Below are positions 27,545-55,470 of a DNA stretch of 64,000 nucleotides, one piece after another. The stretch lies in the sequence record PV340856.1. One strand, given 5' to 3'. A model generated the notes under the pieces. That model was not told the DNA's origin, did no database searches, and saw nothing but the letters and a program-made list of their open reading frames with translations. The stretch's first letter is position 1, and each line of letters starts with the position of its first letter. Made by a program: the position numbers and the translations under genes.

Positions 27545-27618
<74 letters not shown>

Positions 27619-27622
27619 CTTC

Positions 27623-27704
27623 GTCGATGTGGCGGAATTGGTATACGCGCTGGGTTTAGGTTCCAGTGAGGCAACTCATGAAGGTTCAAGTCCTTTCATC
27701 GACA
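27623..27704 (+). tRNA. tRNA-Leu(TAG)
   Basis: Acceptor GTCGATG/CATCGAC; anticodon arm CTGGG-TTTAGGT-TCCAG; long variable arm TGAG-GCAA-CTCA. Confidence 0.95.
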
Positions 27705-27706
27705 CT

Positions 27707-28312
27707 ATGGATTTTAAAATTAGACAATATTGTAACGATCCCTTTAATACTTGTAGGTTATATGACCCTGCAATATTTGAATGTCCTTACGCAGAAGATA
27801 TTAATCCAGGCCTCATGGAGTGGATTAAGTCCAATGTAATTCCACAACCTTCAAATAATGCATTAACAACTCCTTTTAAACCTACTAAAATAGGATTACC
27901 GATTAAAGAGTTGAAAGTTTTGTTTGATTGGATTAATTCTGTATCGGTTGAGTCTTCTGAAATGCTTGCTAGGGGTACAGGAACAGCATATCATTCTGCT
28001 CCTCCAGAATTTAAAAATTTTGAAGTTGCAGATTATTGGGGAATGTGGTATAATGAAGGAGACTTTGCAGAAGAACATAATCATTTTCCATACTCAATGT
28101 CTTTTGCATACTATGTAAACTGCCCAGAAGGAAGTTCTCCTCTAGTATTAGAAGGCAATGAAATTCAGGTTACTGAAGGTAGATTGATTATGTTTGCTGG
28201 TCACCAAAACCACAAGGTAGATCCTTGTCCAGTAAATAATAGATTTATGATTGCTGGTAACATTGCGTATCTTGGTTTTGTAGACGATAATGCGGGTGTA
28301 GTTCAGCGGTAG
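27707..28312 (+). CDS. 2OG-Fe(II) oxygenase superfamily protein
   Basis: WGMWYNEGDFAEEHNH...FAYYVN...LIMFAGHQNHKV...RFMIAGN; ATG 27707 follows tRNA-Leu. Confidence 0.85.
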   Translation: MDFKIRQYCNDPFNTCRLYDPAIFECPYAEDINPGLMEWIKSNVIPQPSNNALTTPFKPTKIGLPIKELKVLFDWINSVSVESSEMLARGTGTAYHSAPPEFKNFEVADYWGMWYNEGDFAEEHNHFPYSMSFAYYVNCPEGSSPLVLEGNEIQVTEGRLIMFAGHQNHKVDPCPVNNRFMIAGNIAYLGFVDDNAGVVQR

Positions 28313-28363
28313 AACGCTATCCTTCCAAGTTAGATGTCGTCGGTTCGATTCCGATCACCCGCT
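28292..28363 (+). tRNA. tRNA-Gly(TCC)
   Basis: Acceptor GCGGGTG/CACCCGC; anticodon loop CTTCCAA; T-loop TTCGATT. Confidence 0.95.
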
Positions 28364-28393
28364 TGTTAAATAGTAATGTGTGTGCAATGACAC

Positions 28394-28678
28394 ATGAATA
28401 CCAAGTTACGAGTCCAACAATCATATGTCTGGTATGAAACTCCCAATCATACCATGATCGTTAAAATGTATTTTTTGAATTATATACCTTTTACATTTGA
28501 TGAGATTCCAGCTGTTGCAATGGATGATCCAGAAGTAATTATGGAAGCAAATAAAAATCAAGTAATCACAACAGAACAATTGTATAAATCTGCTTCTTAT
28601 CTTTCTGAAGAACTTGCAATGCCTTTAATTTATGAAATGGATTTAGAAAACCCACAAGATCTTCCAGATGCATTATGA
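28394..28678 (+). CDS. Hypothetical protein
   Basis: 94-aa ORF; ATGA overlap with the next gene. Confidence 0.7.
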   Translation: MNTKLRVQQSYVWYETPNHTMIVKMYFLNYIPFTFDEIPAVAMDDPEVIMEANKNQVITTEQLYKSASYLSEELAMPLIYEMDLENPQDLPDAL

Positions 28679-29331
28679 TTGACGCATGGTTCTGTGTTCC
28701 CATATACAGAAATTATATAATTCCCACCAAGGATCAAGATTTTAAAATTGAAAAGTTTTTTTATAAATATTGTCAAGACTTTGGACATCTCCTAGACGGT
28801 GGCATTCATAATGTTACTGGAGATATCACAGGACTTATTAAAATTTCCGAACTTGATGAGTTTAAATGGATTAATTCTGATTTATGTTCGCATGTAAATA
28901 ATTTTCTGAGACAAATTGGCGTAGATGTCTCAGAACATATGATTCACATACAGAAATCTTGGCCTGTTGTTTGTGACACAAATGGAAGTGTGTCTCCACA
29001 TAACCATAAAAATGCACATATCAGTGCAGTTTATTATGTTAAATGTGATTCGGACAATGGCGGAGATATTGAATTCCATTGCCCACCTTATCACCCTATT
29101 TTAAATTTGCCAGTGATGCTGGAGAATAATTCTACAGTTAGATATACTCCAGAAAAAAATCTACTTCTAATTTTCCCTTCCTCTCTAGAACATAGAGTTA
29201 CGAAATATATCGGAAAAGACTTCCGTTTTTCTATCTCTTATGATATAATGATTACGTCAAAAAAAGACTCTGGACTGGATACAGAATTAATCGTGACACA
29301 TCCATCAATGTGGACTGTTTTGGGAGATTAG
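28675..29331 (+). CDS. 2OG-Fe(II) oxygenase superfamily protein (TIGR02466-like)
   Basis: KSWP...PHNH...ISAVYYV...LLIFPSSLEHRV...RFSISYDI. Confidence 0.88.
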   Translation: MIDAWFCVPIYRNYIIPTKDQDFKIEKFFYKYCQDFGHLLDGGIHNVTGDITGLIKISELDEFKWINSDLCSHVNNFLRQIGVDVSEHMIHIQKSWPVVCDTNGSVSPHNHKNAHISAVYYVKCDSDNGGDIEFHCPPYHPILNLPVMLENNSTVRYTPEKNLLLIFPSSLEHRVTKYIGKDFRFSISYDIMITSKKDSGLDTELIVTHPSMWTVLGD

Positions 29332-29393
29332 CTCAGAGGTAGAGCTACTCGTTTACACCGAGTCGGTCACTGGTTCAATCCCAGTATCTCCCA
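29322..29393 (+). tRNA. tRNA-Val(TAC)
   Basis: Acceptor GGGAGAT/ATCTCCC; anticodon arm ACTCG-TTTACAC-CGAGT; T-loop TTCAATC. Confidence 0.95.
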
Positions 29394-29400
29394 TAAAAAA

Positions 29401-29649
29401 ATGTTACACGTTAAATGCACTTGTTGCAATAAAGAAATTATTTCGTCTTCAAAGCTACAGACATGTGGTTGTGAAAATAATATGATTGTGAGAAATGGAA
29501 CAGTCACTGCACAAGATTTAAATTACGTAGTTTTAATTAAATCTAAAGATAATATAAAAAATCGTGGTTTCCTGACAAATGCTGACCTAAAATACCAAGA
29601 GGAACGACGCAAACGTAAAGTTCGTAAACTAACTTTTGAGGAACGCTAA
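29401..29649 (+). CDS. Small Zn-ribbon-like hypothetical protein
   Basis: VKCTCCNKE...TCGCEN. Confidence 0.7.
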   Translation: MLHVKCTCCNKEIISSSKLQTCGCENNMIVRNGTVTAQDLNYVVLIKSKDNIKNRGFLTNADLKYQEERRKRKVRKLTFEER

Positions 29650-29849
29650 TGATAAATCTCGATGAACGATACCATTCGTATCTTGCAGGACAGAAAAAAT
29701 TTCGCATTGATGGTGTGGAGGAGGCAGTAAAAGGATATGGATTTGAGTGTGATGGTTCATCAATTGTTGGTTATTATGTGTTGACAGAGAACCATAAACT
29801 CGTATATAATCTAAAAGAACAGTTCCAATATATGGAACATCTTTCTTAA
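29649..29849 (+). CDS. Small hypothetical protein
   Basis: MINLDERYHSYL...; TAATG overlap. Confidence 0.7.
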   Translation: MINLDERYHSYLAGQKKFRIDGVEEAVKGYGFECDGSSIVGYYVLTENHKLVYNLKEQFQYMEHLS

Positions 29850-29887
29850 ATATATAACTTACGTTTAAAAAAATCGCATTAAAGATC

Positions 29888-30490
29888 ATGTTTCAAGTTC
29901 CAAACGCTGAATTGTTTTATCTCACTCAGAAGAATACTCTGAAGAGAAAATCCGTACATGATGAATTTAGAGGAAAGAAAGTTGTAGTTTACTTTGTTTG
30001 CGGAGCATATACCCCCACTTGCAGCACAAAACACGTACCTGAATATGAAGCTGCTTATGATGAAATCAGATCTTTGGGTATTGATGAAGTCTATTGTTGT
30101 TCTATGAATGATCCATGGGTTATGAAATCCTGGTGGAAGTCCATGGATATTAAGAAACATAAGTATCTGTGTGATGGAAACGGTGCTTGGCTCTTGAGGT
30201 TTGAGCAACTTGCTTCTGCAGGACAAAAAGTAGTTCAGTTCTTTAATACGGGTATGGGAAGACGTGCATGGAGACATGCTCTTGTCATTCATGACAATGT
30301 TGTTATGCATGAAGTGCAAGAGACTTCAGAAACTGGAGAAAAAAATAACTCTCCAGACGATCCATATGAATTCACTACTGCTCAATCAATCATTGACTAT
30401 CTTAAAACAAGAGAAGAAGTCAAAAAGAGAAATTTAGAATTTAATGAATCTAAAACTTCATTGTCCGATCCTACAGATGTAAACATCTGA
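29888..30490 (+). CDS. Peroxiredoxin, Prx5-like (Redoxin family)
   Basis: GKKVVVY..CGAYTPTCSTKHVPEY...GIDEVYCCSMNDPWVMKSW...RAWRHAL. Confidence 0.9.
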   Translation: MFQVPNAELFYLTQKNTLKRKSVHDEFRGKKVVVYFVCGAYTPTCSTKHVPEYEAAYDEIRSLGIDEVYCCSMNDPWVMKSWWKSMDIKKHKYLCDGNGAWLLRFEQLASAGQKVVQFFNTGMGRRAWRHALVIHDNVVMHEVQETSETGEKNNSPDDPYEFTTAQSIIDYLKTREEVKKRNLEFNESKTSLSDPTDVNI

Positions 30491-30516
30491 TACTAACCCC
30501 CCCTTCGGGGGATCTA

Positions 30517-30590
30517 CGGGGCTTAGTTCAGTTTGGTAGAACGCTCGCTTTGGGAGCGAGAGGTCACAGGTTCAAATCCTGTAGCCCCGA
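30517..30590 (+). tRNA. tRNA-Pro(TGG)
   Basis: Acceptor CGGGGCT/AGCCCCG; anticodon arm CTCGC-TTTGGGA-GCGAG; T-loop TTCAAAT. Confidence 0.95.
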
Positions 30591-31682: not shown

Positions 31683-32156
31683 ATGTTTGTATTAGATGAT
31701 TTTTTAACTGATTTTCAGATTCAAAAAATCTATAATAGAAACCTCCCTTATGATCATACCCTCTATCCGAAAGAGGAACTTGAATGCTTTTATCCTTTTT
31801 TTGATGAAGCAAAAAAACATTTTGATTTTTCAGAATGTATTGGTTATGAAGTCTGGAGACAACGCAATCCCCAGAATCTCGGTTGGCATTATGATCATGA
31901 TGAAATTCTTCTTCAAACAGAGGATGTTTTTTCTTGGCCAATATGCACAATTGTTTACTACATAAGAGTATGTGATATTCTTGGTGGTAATCTTCTCTTT
32001 AGAGATGGAACGTCCATCAAACCGTTACAAAATCGACTAGTTATTTTTGGTCCTGGTATTGAACATGCTGTTGATGAAATGTTTACGGTTGATGGACACC
32101 GAGATTCTATTCTCATAAATCCCTGGACATATGAGATTAAAAACCCCGTAGGATAA
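31683..32156 (+). CDS. 2OG-Fe(II) oxygenase (prolyl-4-hydroxylase-like)
   Basis: WHYDHDE...TIVYY...GGNLLF...NRLVIF...EHAV...R.SILIN. Confidence 0.85.
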   Translation: MFVLDDFLTDFQIQKIYNRNLPYDHTLYPKEELECFYPFFDEAKKHFDFSECIGYEVWRQRNPQNLGWHYDHDEILLQTEDVFSWPICTIVYYIRVCDILGGNLLFRDGTSIKPLQNRLVIFGPGIEHAVDEMFTVDGHRDSILINPWTYEIKNPVG

Positions 32157-32165
32157 GGGTTAATC

Positions 32166-32235
32166 CTGCTGGTGCGGATGGGATATATCCCGCCTGGTTT
32201 CCAATTTCCAGTAAAAGAATTGGTGGCGAGCCTGC
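32166..32235 (+). ncRNA. wcaG RNA motif-like structured RNA
   Basis: Two TGGYG motifs; hairpins GGGA-TATA-TCCC and CTGG...CCAG; loop CCAATT complementary to downstream AATTGG (pseudoknot); upstream of an epimerase cluster. Confidence 0.7.
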
Positions 32236-32248
32236 AACCCCCCTAAAG

Positions 32249-48018: not shown

Positions 48019-48079
48019 TTGACAGGATTTACTGACAGTGTTAGTATAAATACATCATCAGGTTACGAAACGTAACAAA
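48019..48079 (+). promoter_or_regulatory. psbA composite sigma70 + late promoter with HLR1-like repeat
   Basis: TTGACA-17-TAGTAT overlapping TATAAATA (48045-48052); GTTACGAA-AC-GTAACAAA at 48062-48079. Confidence 0.85.
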
Positions 48080-48084
48080 TGGTC

Positions 48085-48170
48085 GCTCCCCCTAAACCGA
48101 GACCTATAGGGAGAATAAACACGTCTCTAATACCCACACTGGAGGGTGGTGTGGGAATATCATAACTGTC
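48085..48170 (+). ncRNA. PhotoRC-II RNA motif-like psbA leader
   Basis: CTCCC/GGGAG stem, GAGAC/GTCTC pairing and CCCACAC/GTGTGGG hairpin directly upstream of psbA. Confidence 0.75.
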
Positions 48171-54035: not shown

Positions 54036-54443
54036 ATGGAAGTTTTTAGCTCACCCGAAGATTATCTTTTTAATCTTCACACTTGTTCACCAGGAGAAGC
54101 TAGACGCATATGGAAAGACTCTATAAAACAATCTTTTGATTACAAATGTGCCTACTGTGGGTCACGGGAACATCTCACTCTCGATCACGTTATACCCCGT
54201 TTTGCAGGAGGCACCGACGAAACTAAAAATCTTGTTTGTGCATGTAATGACTGCAATAAAGACAAGTCCCATGAGGACTGGCGCACATGGTACAATAGAC
54301 AGTCATTCTATGATCCCTATAAAGAACAAAAAATTACAGAGTGGCAAAATCAAAACATTGGAAATTTCTCCAATTATATTGAAACGAAGCGGGCAGGACT
54401 AGTCTTGACCCGCAATAATTTTGTCTATAAAAAAAATAAATAA
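54036..54443 (+). CDS. HNH endonuclease
   Basis: CAYCG...TLDHVIPRFAGG...NLVCACNDCNKDKS. Confidence 0.92.
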   Translation: MEVFSSPEDYLFNLHTCSPGEARRIWKDSIKQSFDYKCAYCGSREHLTLDHVIPRFAGGTDETKNLVCACNDCNKDKSHEDWRTWYNRQSFYDPYKEQKITEWQNQNIGNFSNYIETKRAGLVLTRNNFVYKKNK

Positions 54444-54445
54444 AC

Positions 54446-54461
54446 TGTATCACATATTACA
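54446..54461 (+). promoter_or_regulatory. NtcA-box (TGTA-N8-TACA)
   Basis: TGTA-TCACATAT-TACA, an exact consensus match, 7 nt upstream of a -35 element. Confidence 0.65.
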
Positions 54462-54468
54462 TAACTAC

Positions 54469-54497
54469 TTGCCTATATATTCTATAGGGTCTATAAT
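54469..54497 (+). promoter_or_regulatory. Sigma70 promoter
   Basis: TTGCCT-17 nt-TATAAT; predicted start about 54503-54505. Confidence 0.75.
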
Positions 54498-54504
54498 AGA
54501 CCTA

Positions 54505-54737
54505 CGTTCATCCAATGATTAGTTTACTTCTGACATTGACCCTTGCCCATCATAATGACATCAACCCTTATGGGTGGCATATGTCATGTGAAAGGTTCCT
54601 CCAACGTCGTGTGGAGATTCAAATGGATCCTAACCTAGACCAACGGTCAAAGTGGGGTTTAATTGGGTATCTCAAGACAAAGGTGGAAGGTCAATGCGAA
54701 GGAGCTTATACATAGGACGCAAGTAAGTCGCGGAACG
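54505..54737 (+). ncRNA. Glutamine-II (Downstream-peptide) riboswitch-like unit 1 enclosing an ORF
   Basis: CGTTCA-TCCAATG[ORF]CATAGGA-CGCA-AGTAAGTCGC-GGAACG. Confidence 0.6.
54515..54715 (+). CDS. 66-aa secreted-type peptide with Cys pair, nested in riboswitch-like unit 1
   Basis: MISLLLTLTLAH...C25...C61. Confidence 0.75.
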   Translation: MISLLLTLTLAHHNDINPYGWHMSCERFLQRRVEIQMDPNLDQRSKWGLIGYLKTKVEGQCEGAYT

Positions 54738-54740
54738 GAG

Positions 54741-54946
54741 CGTTCATCCTATGATTGAGTTAGCACTATTAGCGAGTCTTAGTCGTGGTCCTCAACTGAC
54801 CTGCACTCAGGTCAGAGAAATTGCAGAAACCGTAGTGGAATCTGACATGACGGATCACGATAAAGAAAGATTTCTATCAAAGTTGTTTGGTAGATACATG
54901 ACGCTGAAGTGTCTCAAAGATTAGGACGCAAACGACTGAAGGAACG
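54741..54946 (+). ncRNA. Glutamine-II (Downstream-peptide) riboswitch-like unit 2 enclosing an ORF
   Basis: CGTTCA-TCCTA(TG)[ORF]TAGGA-CGCA-AACGACTGAA-GGAACG. Confidence 0.65.
54751..54924 (+). CDS. 57-aa secreted-type peptide with Cys pair, nested in riboswitch-like unit 2
   Basis: Own translation MIELALLASLSRGPQLTCTQVREIAETVVESDMTDHDKERFLSKLFGRYMTLKCLKD. Confidence 0.7.
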   Translation: MIELALLASLSRGPQLTCTQVREIAETVVESDMTDHDKERFLSKLFGRYMTLKCLKD

Positions 54947-55005
54947 GGAAAACGGATCCAGCGAAAGCTGAGAAGGTTAACTTTCCATTCATTCAGGTAC
55001 GACAA

Positions 55006-55170
55006 ATGAACACACTTACTATCATCAAAAAGCAAATCGAGAAAGCAGCACGTCTGCATGACGCACAAATTCTTCACACTACATATCGTGGTGTAAAGTA
55101 TGAGTGCAAGCAAGAAGGCGAAGAAGTACATGGTACTTTCTGCTATCGCGGTCGCAACTACAGTAAGTGA
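55006..55170 (+). CDS. DUF4278-family peptide (IF17/GifB-like, YRG motifs)
   Basis: Own translation MNTLTIIKKQIEKAARLHDAQILHTTYRGVKYECKQEGEEVHGTFCYRGRNYSK. Confidence 0.75.
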   Translation: MNTLTIIKKQIEKAARLHDAQILHTTYRGVKYECKQEGEEVHGTFCYRGRNYSK

Positions 55171-55174
55171 TGTC

Positions 55175-55267
55175 ATGGAAGCACTACAAATTGTAGGGTC
55201 AATTACCCTTGGTTGTGTTGCGGCGATGACATTACTTTACGGAGAGATTCTTCTCCTCCAAAAATAA
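55175..55267 (+). CDS. 30-aa hydrophobic peptide
   Basis: Own translation MEALQIVGSITLGCVAAMTLLYGEILLLQK. Confidence 0.55.
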   Translation: MEALQIVGSITLGCVAAMTLLYGEILLLQK

Positions 55268-55269
55268 AC

Positions 55270-55297
55270 AAGAGGGGTTGTCACCCCTCTTTTTTTA
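55270..55297 (+). terminator. Intrinsic terminator (copy 1 of a 21-bp direct repeat)
   Basis: AGAGGGGT-TGTC-ACCCCTCT followed by Ts. Confidence 0.85.
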
Positions 55298-55470
55298 TCT
55301 TTACATACTTTGTATAGTCTAGTATACAAAAGATAAGAGTTAATGCAATACGTAGCGATTCCGTCAGAGTTTGCTAACATTTGTCCTATATAATTTACGA
55401 ATTTGGAAAAGTCTTATGAAATGAAACCCCCCAATTTTTATTATATGAAAATTATACGTGGAGGTGGACA

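Follow-up and report, generated by a model that had tools for sequence, protein, structure and literature searches.

Small genes within the hairpin loops of a probably nested glutamine-type aptamer in T4-like cyanophages

Riboswitch aptamers are usually regarded as compact non-coding domains in untranslated leaders. Here we describe a locus in which two cores, assigned from their sequence to the glutamine-aptamer class, each surround a small gene. The locus lies at positions 54505–54948 of a 64,000-nucleotide (nt) stretch of DNA (the window), which matches Synechococcus phage Sf-FS3 (PV340856.1) with 100% identity. Both classes of glutamine aptamer, their link to DUF4278 genes and the frequent tandem arrangement of glutamine riboswitches are already known. 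A small number of cyanophages have been reported to carry glutamine aptamers (PMC5473149; PMC9964418), and a 2017 survey listed only two in cyanophage genomes (PMC5473149). The available portion of the 2010 glnA alignment already contains marine metagenome sequences of exactly this type; there, unit 1 (the upstream core) is aligned alone and the equivalent of our second open reading frame (ORF2) is marked as the downstream gene. In the literature covered, which lacks Ames and Breaker (2011) and Ren et al. (2015), we found no description of genes inside aptamer loops, of stems containing start and stop codons, of a helix between the linkers of two units, or of a nested reading. Nor did we find there a description of the near-universal presence of the element in T4-like cyanophages, or anything relevant on Syn9 transcription start sites or phage IF17-like genes.

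The type I aptamer (glnA RNA, RF01739) has a P1 helix of CGUUC and GAACG, a conserved A, a P2 hairpin, a J2/3 of CG(G/C)AAGUA, a P3 helix and a J3/1 of GAAG, and is associated with DUF4278/IF17-like genes; the window shares all of these features. Unlike type I, P3 here would be formed from the linkers of two units and capped by a permuted second aptamer, the long-range pair is a type-II-like C...G (CGC...GGAACGG, against the type-I consensus CGG...GGAACGC), and whole genes lie in both P2 loops of an aptamer of 442 nt that is unseen by the Rfam model. The glutamine-II RNA (Downstream-peptide, RF01704) has the core of the window (CGUUCA, hairpin, CGCA...GGAACGG) and likewise stands upstream of DUF4278 genes, and P1 of the wild-type Prochlorococcus RNA also starts AUCC and ends GGAC (PMC6698751). 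However, the preferred fold here is nested rather than an H-type pseudoknot, and single units mostly score below the gathering threshold of that family. Tandem riboswitches, such as the glycine doublets and the 157 glutamine doublets reported (PMC9481103), place two cores for the same ligand in one leader, probably giving a sharper response, whereas the cores here lie 2–6 nt apart, are interlocked via a shared helix (probably domain-swapped), have a single expression platform in common and carry genes in their loops. A more distant parallel is offered by group I and II introns with ORFs in peripheral loops, where a conserved RNA fold also hosts whole genes and the presence of the ORF is polymorphic. 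In contrast to these, the host RNA here is a small metabolite aptamer and not a ribozyme, and the proteins are small paralogues rather than homing endonucleases or maturases, with their start and stop codons in the closing stem.

An initial annotation of the window had described two units with the pattern CGTTCA-stem-CGCA-10 nt-GGAACG, and every motif of both is in place on the plus strand, on which all features of the locus lie. The 5′ halves read CGTTCA-TCCAATG in unit 1 (from 54505) and CGTTCA-TCCTATG in unit 2 (from 54741), with TCC directly after each CGTTCA. The 3′ half of unit 1 is CATAGGA-CGCAAGTAAGTCGC-GGAACG, ending at 54737, after which GAG separates the units; that of unit 2 is TAGGA-CGCAAACGACTGAA-GGAACG, ending at 54946. 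The corresponding stretches 54715–54737 and 54924–54946 read GGACGCAAGTAAGTCGCGGAACG and GGACGCAAACGACTGAAGGAACG, and exact CGTTCATCC occurs in the window in two copies only, those of units 1 and 2. The pattern GGACGCA-N10-GGAACG has two exact matches in the 64 kb and a third with two mismatches; in shuffled sequence the mean was 0.38 matches with up to two mismatches, and three were reached in 0 of 100 shuffles. CGTTCA by itself is not enriched (25 seen, 24 expected), so the signal resides in the combination of motifs. Chance does not account for the paired motifs.

Each unit encloses a complete ORF, as had been annotated. ORF1 (66 amino acids, 54515–54715), which is unannotated in the Sf-FS3 GenBank record, belongs to phrog_6471 and the Syn9 gp196 family, and ORF2 (57 amino acids, SfFS3_249, 54751–54924) belongs to the Syn9 gp197 family. 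In both units the ATG lies in the 5′ stem strand and the stop codon in or beside the 3′ strand. The stem around ORF1 (outer P2) pairs UCCAAUG (54511–54517), which holds the start codon (54515–54517), with CAUAGGA (54711–54717), which holds the UAG stop (54713–54715). The stem around ORF2 (inner P2′) pairs UCCUA (54747–54751), whose last base is the A of the start codon (54751–54753), with UAGGA (54922–54926), which holds the UAG stop (54922–54924). The transcript had been expected to start at unit 1, in agreement with a sigma-70-type promoter at 54469–54497 (TTGCCT at 54469–54474, a 17-nt spacer, TATAAT at 54492–54497) with a predicted start at about 54503–54505. Of 297 related loci, 240 have a −35/−10 pair, and the distance from the end of the −10 element to CGTTCA is 7–9 nt in 219 of them.

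The region is matched by 419 phage records, including Syn9, in which the three ORFs of the locus correspond to gp196, gp197 and gp198, and the same cores are kept in more than 300 related phage loci. In 80 IMG/VR loci found via ORF1, both motif pairs are nearly unchanged. Two more sets of at least 120 loci each were analyzed. One, unbiased with regard to ORFs, was selected solely through the downstream half of unit 1. The other represents a second sequence class, distinguished by longer linkers, that is at least equally abundant and has a like mix of states. Among the matches listed for the unbiased sample, unit 1 is compact and unit 2 holds an ORF in 77, both units hold an ORF in 22, and both are compact in 9. 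The compact hairpins measure 12–47 nt and are capped by UUCG, GNRA or other loops; their stems vary yet remain complementary (UCCC/GGGA, UCCGA/UCGGA, UCAGAG/CUCUGA, ACCC/GGGU, UUCGCUAUU/AAUAGCGAA).

Two further variants were seen among the relatives. In two loci (L164 and L204), an insert of about 100 nt, closed by ATTAGA/TCTAAT and coding for just a 7–10-codon ORF, separates GGAACGG of unit 1 from CGTTCA of unit 2, at the position of the inner P1′ hairpin loop of the nested model below, which shows that a third loop of the scaffold also tolerates insertion. A locus near-identical to the window (L041:1189-1535) carries a deletion that fuses ORF1, at about codon 57, to the middle of ORF2, so that only one unit remains, a chimera whose 5′ half comes from unit 1 and whose 3′ half comes from unit 2. 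Finally, a scan of genome contigs for host DUF4278 loci returned a single contig (L085, NHGE01000043.1, labelled MAG: Euryarchaeota archaeon TMED129). It bears the phage-type double aptamer and promoter, and is probably a cyanophage fragment misbinned into an archaeal metagenome-assembled genome (MAG).

Both ORF-closing stems covary among relatives, a check that the initial annotation had put forward. For the ORF1 stem, 79.4% of cells are paired across 45 distinct sequences, compared with 70.2% in shuffles (reached by 0 of 500) and 28–49% with a slid partner. Its pair 3 is C-G in 23, U-A in 17, U-G in 2 and A-U in 1, and its pair 4 is U-A in 15, C-G in 12, A-U in 2 and mismatched in 16. Even the stop codon of ORF1 (UGA, UAA or UAG) covaries with the four bases 5′ of its start (UCUC, UCUU or UCC[U/A]). 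The ORF2 stem is paired at positions 1–5 in 89–100% of 113 distinct sequences, with three to four pair types at pairs 1, 3 and 4 (for example, U-A 106, C-G 6 and G-C 1 at pair 1; C-G 89, U-A 15, U-G 5 and A-U 3 at pair 4). RNAalifold, applied unguided to 50 diverse ORF2 units, returned as long-range pairs only the 5-base-pair (bp) CGUUC/GAACG helix and the 5-bp flanking stem, together with an extra 2-bp local hairpin beside the 3′ core, and no conserved structure within ORF2. ORF1 contains a further long-range helix, in which CAUUGACC (54534–54541) pairs with GGUCAAUG (54689–54696). It was predicted by RNAalifold from 43 relatives, where one of its pairs is G-C in 32 and C-G in 6, and it is also present in the minimum free energy (MFE) structure. 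In compact doubles, in which neither unit holds an ORF, four of four P2 pairs and four of five P2′ pairs covary.

The ATG lies 4 nt 3′ of CGTTCA in 76 of 92 ORF1 units and 160 of 170 ORF2 units, and the ORF1 stop ends 2 nt 5′ of CGCA in 78 of 92. The reading frame of ORF2 usually (159 of 170) extends across the aptamer strand to the UGA of CUGAAGG, so that its last five codons are the aptamer strand GGGACGCAAACGACUGA, which is coding and aptamer at once; ORF2 of the window is of the minority type, with a UAG stop inside the stem. At the 3′ end of ORF2 (e.g. L002:1236-1250), most products finish ...W-D-A-N-D-stop, and those of the second class ...D-A-K-A-D-stop. From this comparative evidence, the stems enclosing both ORFs are under selection. 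Whichever topology is adopted below, each ORF occupies the loop of an aptamer P2-type hairpin.

ORF1 and ORF2 themselves evolve as coding sequence, as judged from the ratio of nonsynonymous to synonymous polymorphism (pN/pS), which for ORF1 is 0.21 in the reading frame and 1.23 and 1.54 in the two other frames, and for ORF2 is 0.48, with 0.83 and 1.65 in the others. The two families are paralogous (hhalign 94.4%, E 9e-8), and each has two invariant Cys residues. In the predicted fold of both proteins, a hydrophobic helix at the N terminus leads into a helical hairpin (predicted local distance difference test, pLDDT, of 79 and 81), and a fold search of the PDB with the ORF1 model gave nothing better than E 2.9. 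In the second class, the long loops hold members of both subfamilies (30 of 30 for unit 1, 71 of 74 for unit 2).

We compared the cores with the two curated glutamine-aptamer models, for which the gathering scores are 35 bits (RF01739) and 33 bits (RF01704). The initial annotation had suggested searching with the loops collapsed, and naturally collapsed homologues do match significantly, some of them above the gathering score. Single compact units match both models at E 3e-4 to 0.015 with 24–33 bits, below the gathering thresholds. For RF01704, which has no match in the window, compact single units score 24–32 bits with two exceptions (L119, 34.0; L323, 40.1). Six natural compact doubles match RF01739 at 38.4–43.6 bits, in each case as one match across both units. 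This alignment takes P1 from CGUUC of unit 1 and GAACG of unit 2, uses hairpin 1 as P2, and assigns CGCAAGUA to J2/3, AGU.../...ACU to P3 and GAAG to J3/1. The highest-scoring double, L100 (85 nt, 43.6 bits), shares 69 of its 70 core bases outside both P2 loops with the window.

The nucleotides of the binding pocket are also present. In the type-II crystal structure, the ligand is contacted by C1, G2, G18, C19, C39 and G40, and G41 pairs with C19 (PMC6698751); all of these, C1, G2, G18, C19, C39, G40 and G41:C19, are present in both units (in CGUUCA, CGC and GGAACGG). A type-II aptamer split into two strands still binds glutamine (PMC6698751), which is relevant to an aptamer whose halves lie 150–200 nt apart, and binding was also kept when the peripheral P2 was swapped for a tetraloop for crystallography (PMC6698751). 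The cores belong to the glutamine-aptamer class as the initial annotation held, by the match of natural compact relatives to RF01739 and RF01704.

The initial annotation had further read the units as two independent type-II (Downstream-peptide) aptamers, and this part probably has to be revised. A type-II local P2 hairpin around GGAACGG was not found, and the alignments to the model skip most of its P2 columns. There is no complementary strand 3′ of GGAACGG, and the strand preceding it pairs with the linker of the other unit. The linkers are mutually complementary in both classes (AGUCG/CGACU in that of the window, AGCCGAC[U/A]/[A/U]GCCGACU in the second), and in the second class both are lengthened together; there, the terminal pair of P3 is U:A in 86 and A:U in 26, with mismatches in 0 of 112 loci. 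The halves of the E-loop are divided, AAGUA occurring in unit 1 only and GAAG in unit 2 only, so that the two units jointly form one canonical type-I junction. Thus, we propose that the locus is probably one nested type-I-like double aptamer and not two independent aptamers.

In the nested fold, P3 is accompanied by two inter-unit helices, one formed by the unit 1 CGUUC and the unit 2 GAACG, the other by the unit 1 GAACG and the unit 2 CGUUC. This is the MFE fold in six of eight compact doubles folded, where it is 2.5–5 kcal/mol better than the tandem fold. Of the other two, L144 was mis-parsed, and in L100 the nested fold is 2.6 kcal/mol better than tandem but the unconstrained MFE (−27.3) is a third fold. 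For 54503–54950 of the window (448 nt), the unconstrained MFE is nested at −147.9 kcal/mol, against −145.1 for tandem. RNAalifold, given 36 natural compact doubles, chose the swapped helices. The nested structure is paired at 94.7% of cells in these sequences, compared with 87.6% in shuffles (reached by 0 of 500) and 31–57% when slid, and ten of its pairs are changed on both sides. The insert with its own closing stem between the units of L164 and L204 is as expected of a hairpin loop.

The outer, type-I-like aptamer (54505–54946) would thus begin with CGUUCA of unit 1 (54505–54510), which is invariant in all loci and supplies the 5′ strand of P1 (CGUUC) and the conserved A. P1 would be closed by GAACG (54942–54946), followed by GG to 54948, as in the unconstrained MFE and the RNAalifold structure of compact relatives. 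Between these strands lie P2 (UCC.../...GGA), J2/3 (CGCAAGUA, 54718–54725, with the CGC strand of the ligand pocket and the E-loop AGUA, aligned to the RF01739 consensus CGGAAGUA), P3 and J3/1 (GAAG, 54938–54941, in agreement with the consensus GAAG-GAACG). P3 would pair AGUCG (54726–54730) with CGACU (54933–54937), as supported by the RF01739 alignment, folding, covariation in the second class and the joint shift of linker lengths. The inner aptamer would cap P3 as a circularly permuted core. Its P1′ would be formed by GAACG (54733–54737, within GGAACGG of unit 1, 54732–54738) and, across a 3-nt GAG loop, CGUUC (54741–54745) of the unit 2 CGUUCA (54741–54746, including its conserved A), as predicted by both MFE and RNAalifold, and it would be completed by P2′ and the conserved J2/3 CGCAAA (54927–54932, with an A/C variant at one position). 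Each P2 loop would consist of a complete small gene of the paralogous pair, with the AUG 4 nt past CGUUCA and the stop in the 3′ strand. A standalone permuted motif 5′ of ORF2 (GGA-CGCA...GGAACG-GAG-CGUUCA-UCC) was considered as a candidate and is absorbed into this inner aptamer. Overall, a composite glutamine-sensing RNA at 54505–54948, forming the 5′ end of an early-type phage transcript and nested with genes in its P2 loops, is the reading that we favour, with moderate confidence.

The strongest competitor, which we regard as less likely, is a tandem arrangement, in which each CGUUC pairs with the GAACG of its own unit and encloses its own ORF, and the linker helix is a contact between two aptamers. 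Each unit has the full set of core nucleotides, glutamine doublets are common (the 157 above), and the 2010 glnA alignment, in the portion available, handles the units separately. Several observations shared with or adjoining this alternative weigh against the nested, glutamine-sensing reading. Single units match both models, as given above, and in the second class single units reach the gathering scores alone (L323, 40.1; L265, 37.1). Unit 1, taken together with the linker helix, is connected in the same way as the type-II pseudoknot whose structure is solved (PMC6698751). The CGUUC/GAACG helices P1 and P1′ are invariant, so covariation cannot separate nested from tandem pairing; the covariation of the P3 terminal pair may reflect one or few evolutionary events, and P3 of the second class has two systematic C.A mismatches. 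The ORF1 stem of the window consists of 3 + 3 bp about an A.A mismatch, with 16 of 45 distinct relatives mismatched there. Rfam gave no glutamine riboswitch in the window, either over its whole length at the gathering threshold or within 54400–55300 at E up to 10; this miss arises because the two ORFs stretch the element to 442 nt, and is not evidence of absence. The regulatory direction proposed below is taken over from host riboswitches, and outer P1 has to bring together strands about 440 nt apart at a time when ribosomes can already load onto the growing transcript, such that folding in vivo may be rare or slow.

Against the tandem arrangement stand its poorer energy (by 2.5–5 kcal/mol relative to the nested fold in compact doubles, and by 2.8 relative to the MFE for the window), the preference of RNAalifold for swapped pairing, and the E-loop halves, which are split across the units as in a single type-I aptamer. 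On geometric grounds, tandem aptamers with the linker helix would leave the CGC strand of unit 2 just 2 nt in which to cross an 8-bp helix. Just 2–6 nt lie between the units, and the two loci with a longer spacer have an insert with its own closing stem. The nested model is thus moderately favoured over the tandem one.

Downstream of the aptamer, a 59-nt leader separates the end of the unit 2 GGAACG (54946) from the third gene, a DUF4278/IF17-like ORF of 54 amino acids (SfFS3_250, 55006–55170; Syn9 gp198 family, phrog_545). The initial annotation had called this a DUF4278 ORF. The match of the window ORF itself is weak (19.8 bits, cut-off 25.3), but the family as a whole fits better, with DUF4278 (PF14105) matched by 43 of 48 members taken from this position (best E 2.3e-7), which bears out the assignment. 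The leader contributes to a candidate expression platform, in which CUGAAG (54936–54941, the last two bases of P3 plus J3/1) pairs with 54991–54996, inside a segment (54991–54998) in which the 3′ strand AUUCAG overlaps the Shine-Dalgarno-like AGGU (54995–54998). In relatives, CU[G/A]AAG pairs with xUU[C/U]AG directly 5′ of a GGAG or GGU ribosome-binding site, with the ATG 9–11 nt further on. CTAAAG is partnered by CTTTAG in 34 of 34 cases, and CTGAAG by TTCAG (94) or TTTAG (44). The platform helix and the folded outer aptamer are mutually exclusive. With the leader included, the MFE structure consists instead of the platform hairpin and the hairpin of inner P1′ (z-score −5.7), which fits two competing states. 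We also considered CUGAA/UUCAG as a type-II P2 downstream of unit 2; the helix covers the equivalents of A33–G35 and parts of P3 and J3/1, and is assigned to the expression platform instead.

The platform loop can hold an optional insert, at 54952–54980 in the window (ACGGAUCC, a GNRA hairpin, AGAAGGUUAA), which is found in about 42 of 173 loci. Its 4-bp hairpin covaries (CAGC/GCUG, CUGC/GCAG, CAUC/GAUG, CUCG/CGAG), and the insert resembles the J2/3-P3-J3/1 portion of a degenerate third aptamer. At the other end of the DUF4278 gene, a small hydrophobic ORF (SfFS3_251, 55130–55267, 45 amino acids from the ATG at 55130) overlaps the gene end. Similar peptides follow the gene in Sf-FR1, S-8S56, S-SM1 and S-T4, and SfFS3_251 may be a fourth small protein of the operon, which ends at an intrinsic terminator-like hairpin with a T tract (55270–55299).

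How would the nested RNA act? Both types of glutamine riboswitch switch ON IF17-like genes in cyanobacteria (PMC6212724). Since all type-II ligand-contact nucleotides are present, we infer that glutamine is bound by both pockets. Binding would stabilise the double aptamer, lock P3 and J3/1, and withdraw CUGAAG from the platform helix; the freed DUF4278 ribosome-binding site would make the element an ON switch, as in cyanobacterial gifB leaders. The folded aptamer would at the same time bury the start codons of ORF1 and ORF2; the leader of ORF1 is about 12 nt long and lacks a Shine-Dalgarno sequence. Conversely, ribosomes on ORF1 or ORF2 would melt P2, the ORF1 internal helix or P2′, and where ORF2 stops at the UGA of CUGAAG they would also cover P3 and J3/1. 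The outcome would be reciprocal expression of the two small proteins and the IF17-like protein, set by glutamine level and ribosome traffic. We infer from these features a glutamine-dependent, translation-coupled control of the operon, as the initial annotation had suggested. The MS2 coat-replicase long-distance interaction and leader-peptide attenuators are alike in that ribosome passage would open a long-range helix and alter a downstream gene. Unlike in those systems, the helix here is part of a ligand-binding aptamer, to which translation would be coupled.

A more specific proposal, which we put forward only tentatively, is that the interlocked aptamers, sharing one helix, work as a toggle, with glutamine and ribosomes both acting as gates. 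At low glutamine, or with ribosome-filled loops, the small paralogues would be made and the IF17-like gene shut. At high glutamine the aptamers would lock, the start codons would be buried and the IF17-like gene would be open.

Alternatively, the ORFs could be cargo in tolerant hairpin loops, such that the ORF-bearing RNA is not a sensor, or controls DUF4278 only, and the clamping has no regulatory meaning for the ORFs. We consider this improbable. It would account for the polymorphic presence of ORFs among close relatives, the inserts in the third loop (L164, L204), the deletion variant that fuses both ORFs (L041) and the paralogy of the ORFs, which suggests copying between loops; P2 is also peripheral, and its replacement by a tetraloop kept binding (PMC6698751). 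However, the ORF-flanking stems still covary after ORF acquisition, including the stop codon and leader, and the cores are invariant in ORF-bearing units. The ATG is fixed 4 nt after CGUUCA (76 of 92 and 160 of 170 units), an extra covarying helix within ORF1 draws its ends together, and most ORF2 genes terminate within the aptamer strand. That the conserved sequences are no metabolite sensor at all, but reflect coding constraint (ORF2 ...WDAND-stop, whose last five codons are the motif GGGACGCAAACGACUGA in 159 of 170 units), a protein-binding site or a cistron-separating RNase-processing site, is highly implausible, since the 3′ core is kept without ORF2 (L065, L058 and nine compact doubles) and where ORF2 stops earlier, including in the window, and since the cores match two curated glutamine-aptamer models with all ligand-contact nucleotides present.

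Other Rfam matches of the window fit a T4-like cyanomyovirus, with a wcaG RNA (83.6 bits, 32140–32237) and a PhotoRC-II RNA (78 bits, 48073–48168), and five tRNA genes lie at 27545–30590; all three are ordinary features of T4-like cyanophages. An HNH endonuclease ORF (54036–54443; Pfam HNH_5, E 1.5e-11) stands between a carbamoyltransferase gene and the riboswitch promoter. It is absent from the equivalent position in Syn9, Sf-FR1 and S-8S56, and probably inserted recently as a mobile element.

In these phages whole genes sit inside an intact aptamer of a validated class, so that sensing a ligand and translating these genes must interfere, a regulatory principle for which we found no description among riboswitches. 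If confirmed, the nested double aptamer with its shared helix would be a new tandem-riboswitch architecture, and the loci with no, one or two ORFs on one RNA scaffold form a natural series for experiment. The element, present in hundreds of genomes and contigs of T4-like cyanophages but overlooked by standard model searches, would revise the view of phages as rare users of riboswitches. It also points to phage control of host nitrogen assimilation via the IF17-like, putative glutamine-synthetase-inactivating protein. If the toggle proves true, abundant marine cyanophages could read the nitrogen status of their host early in infection, and could choose between two protein outputs from a single 0.7-kb transcript.

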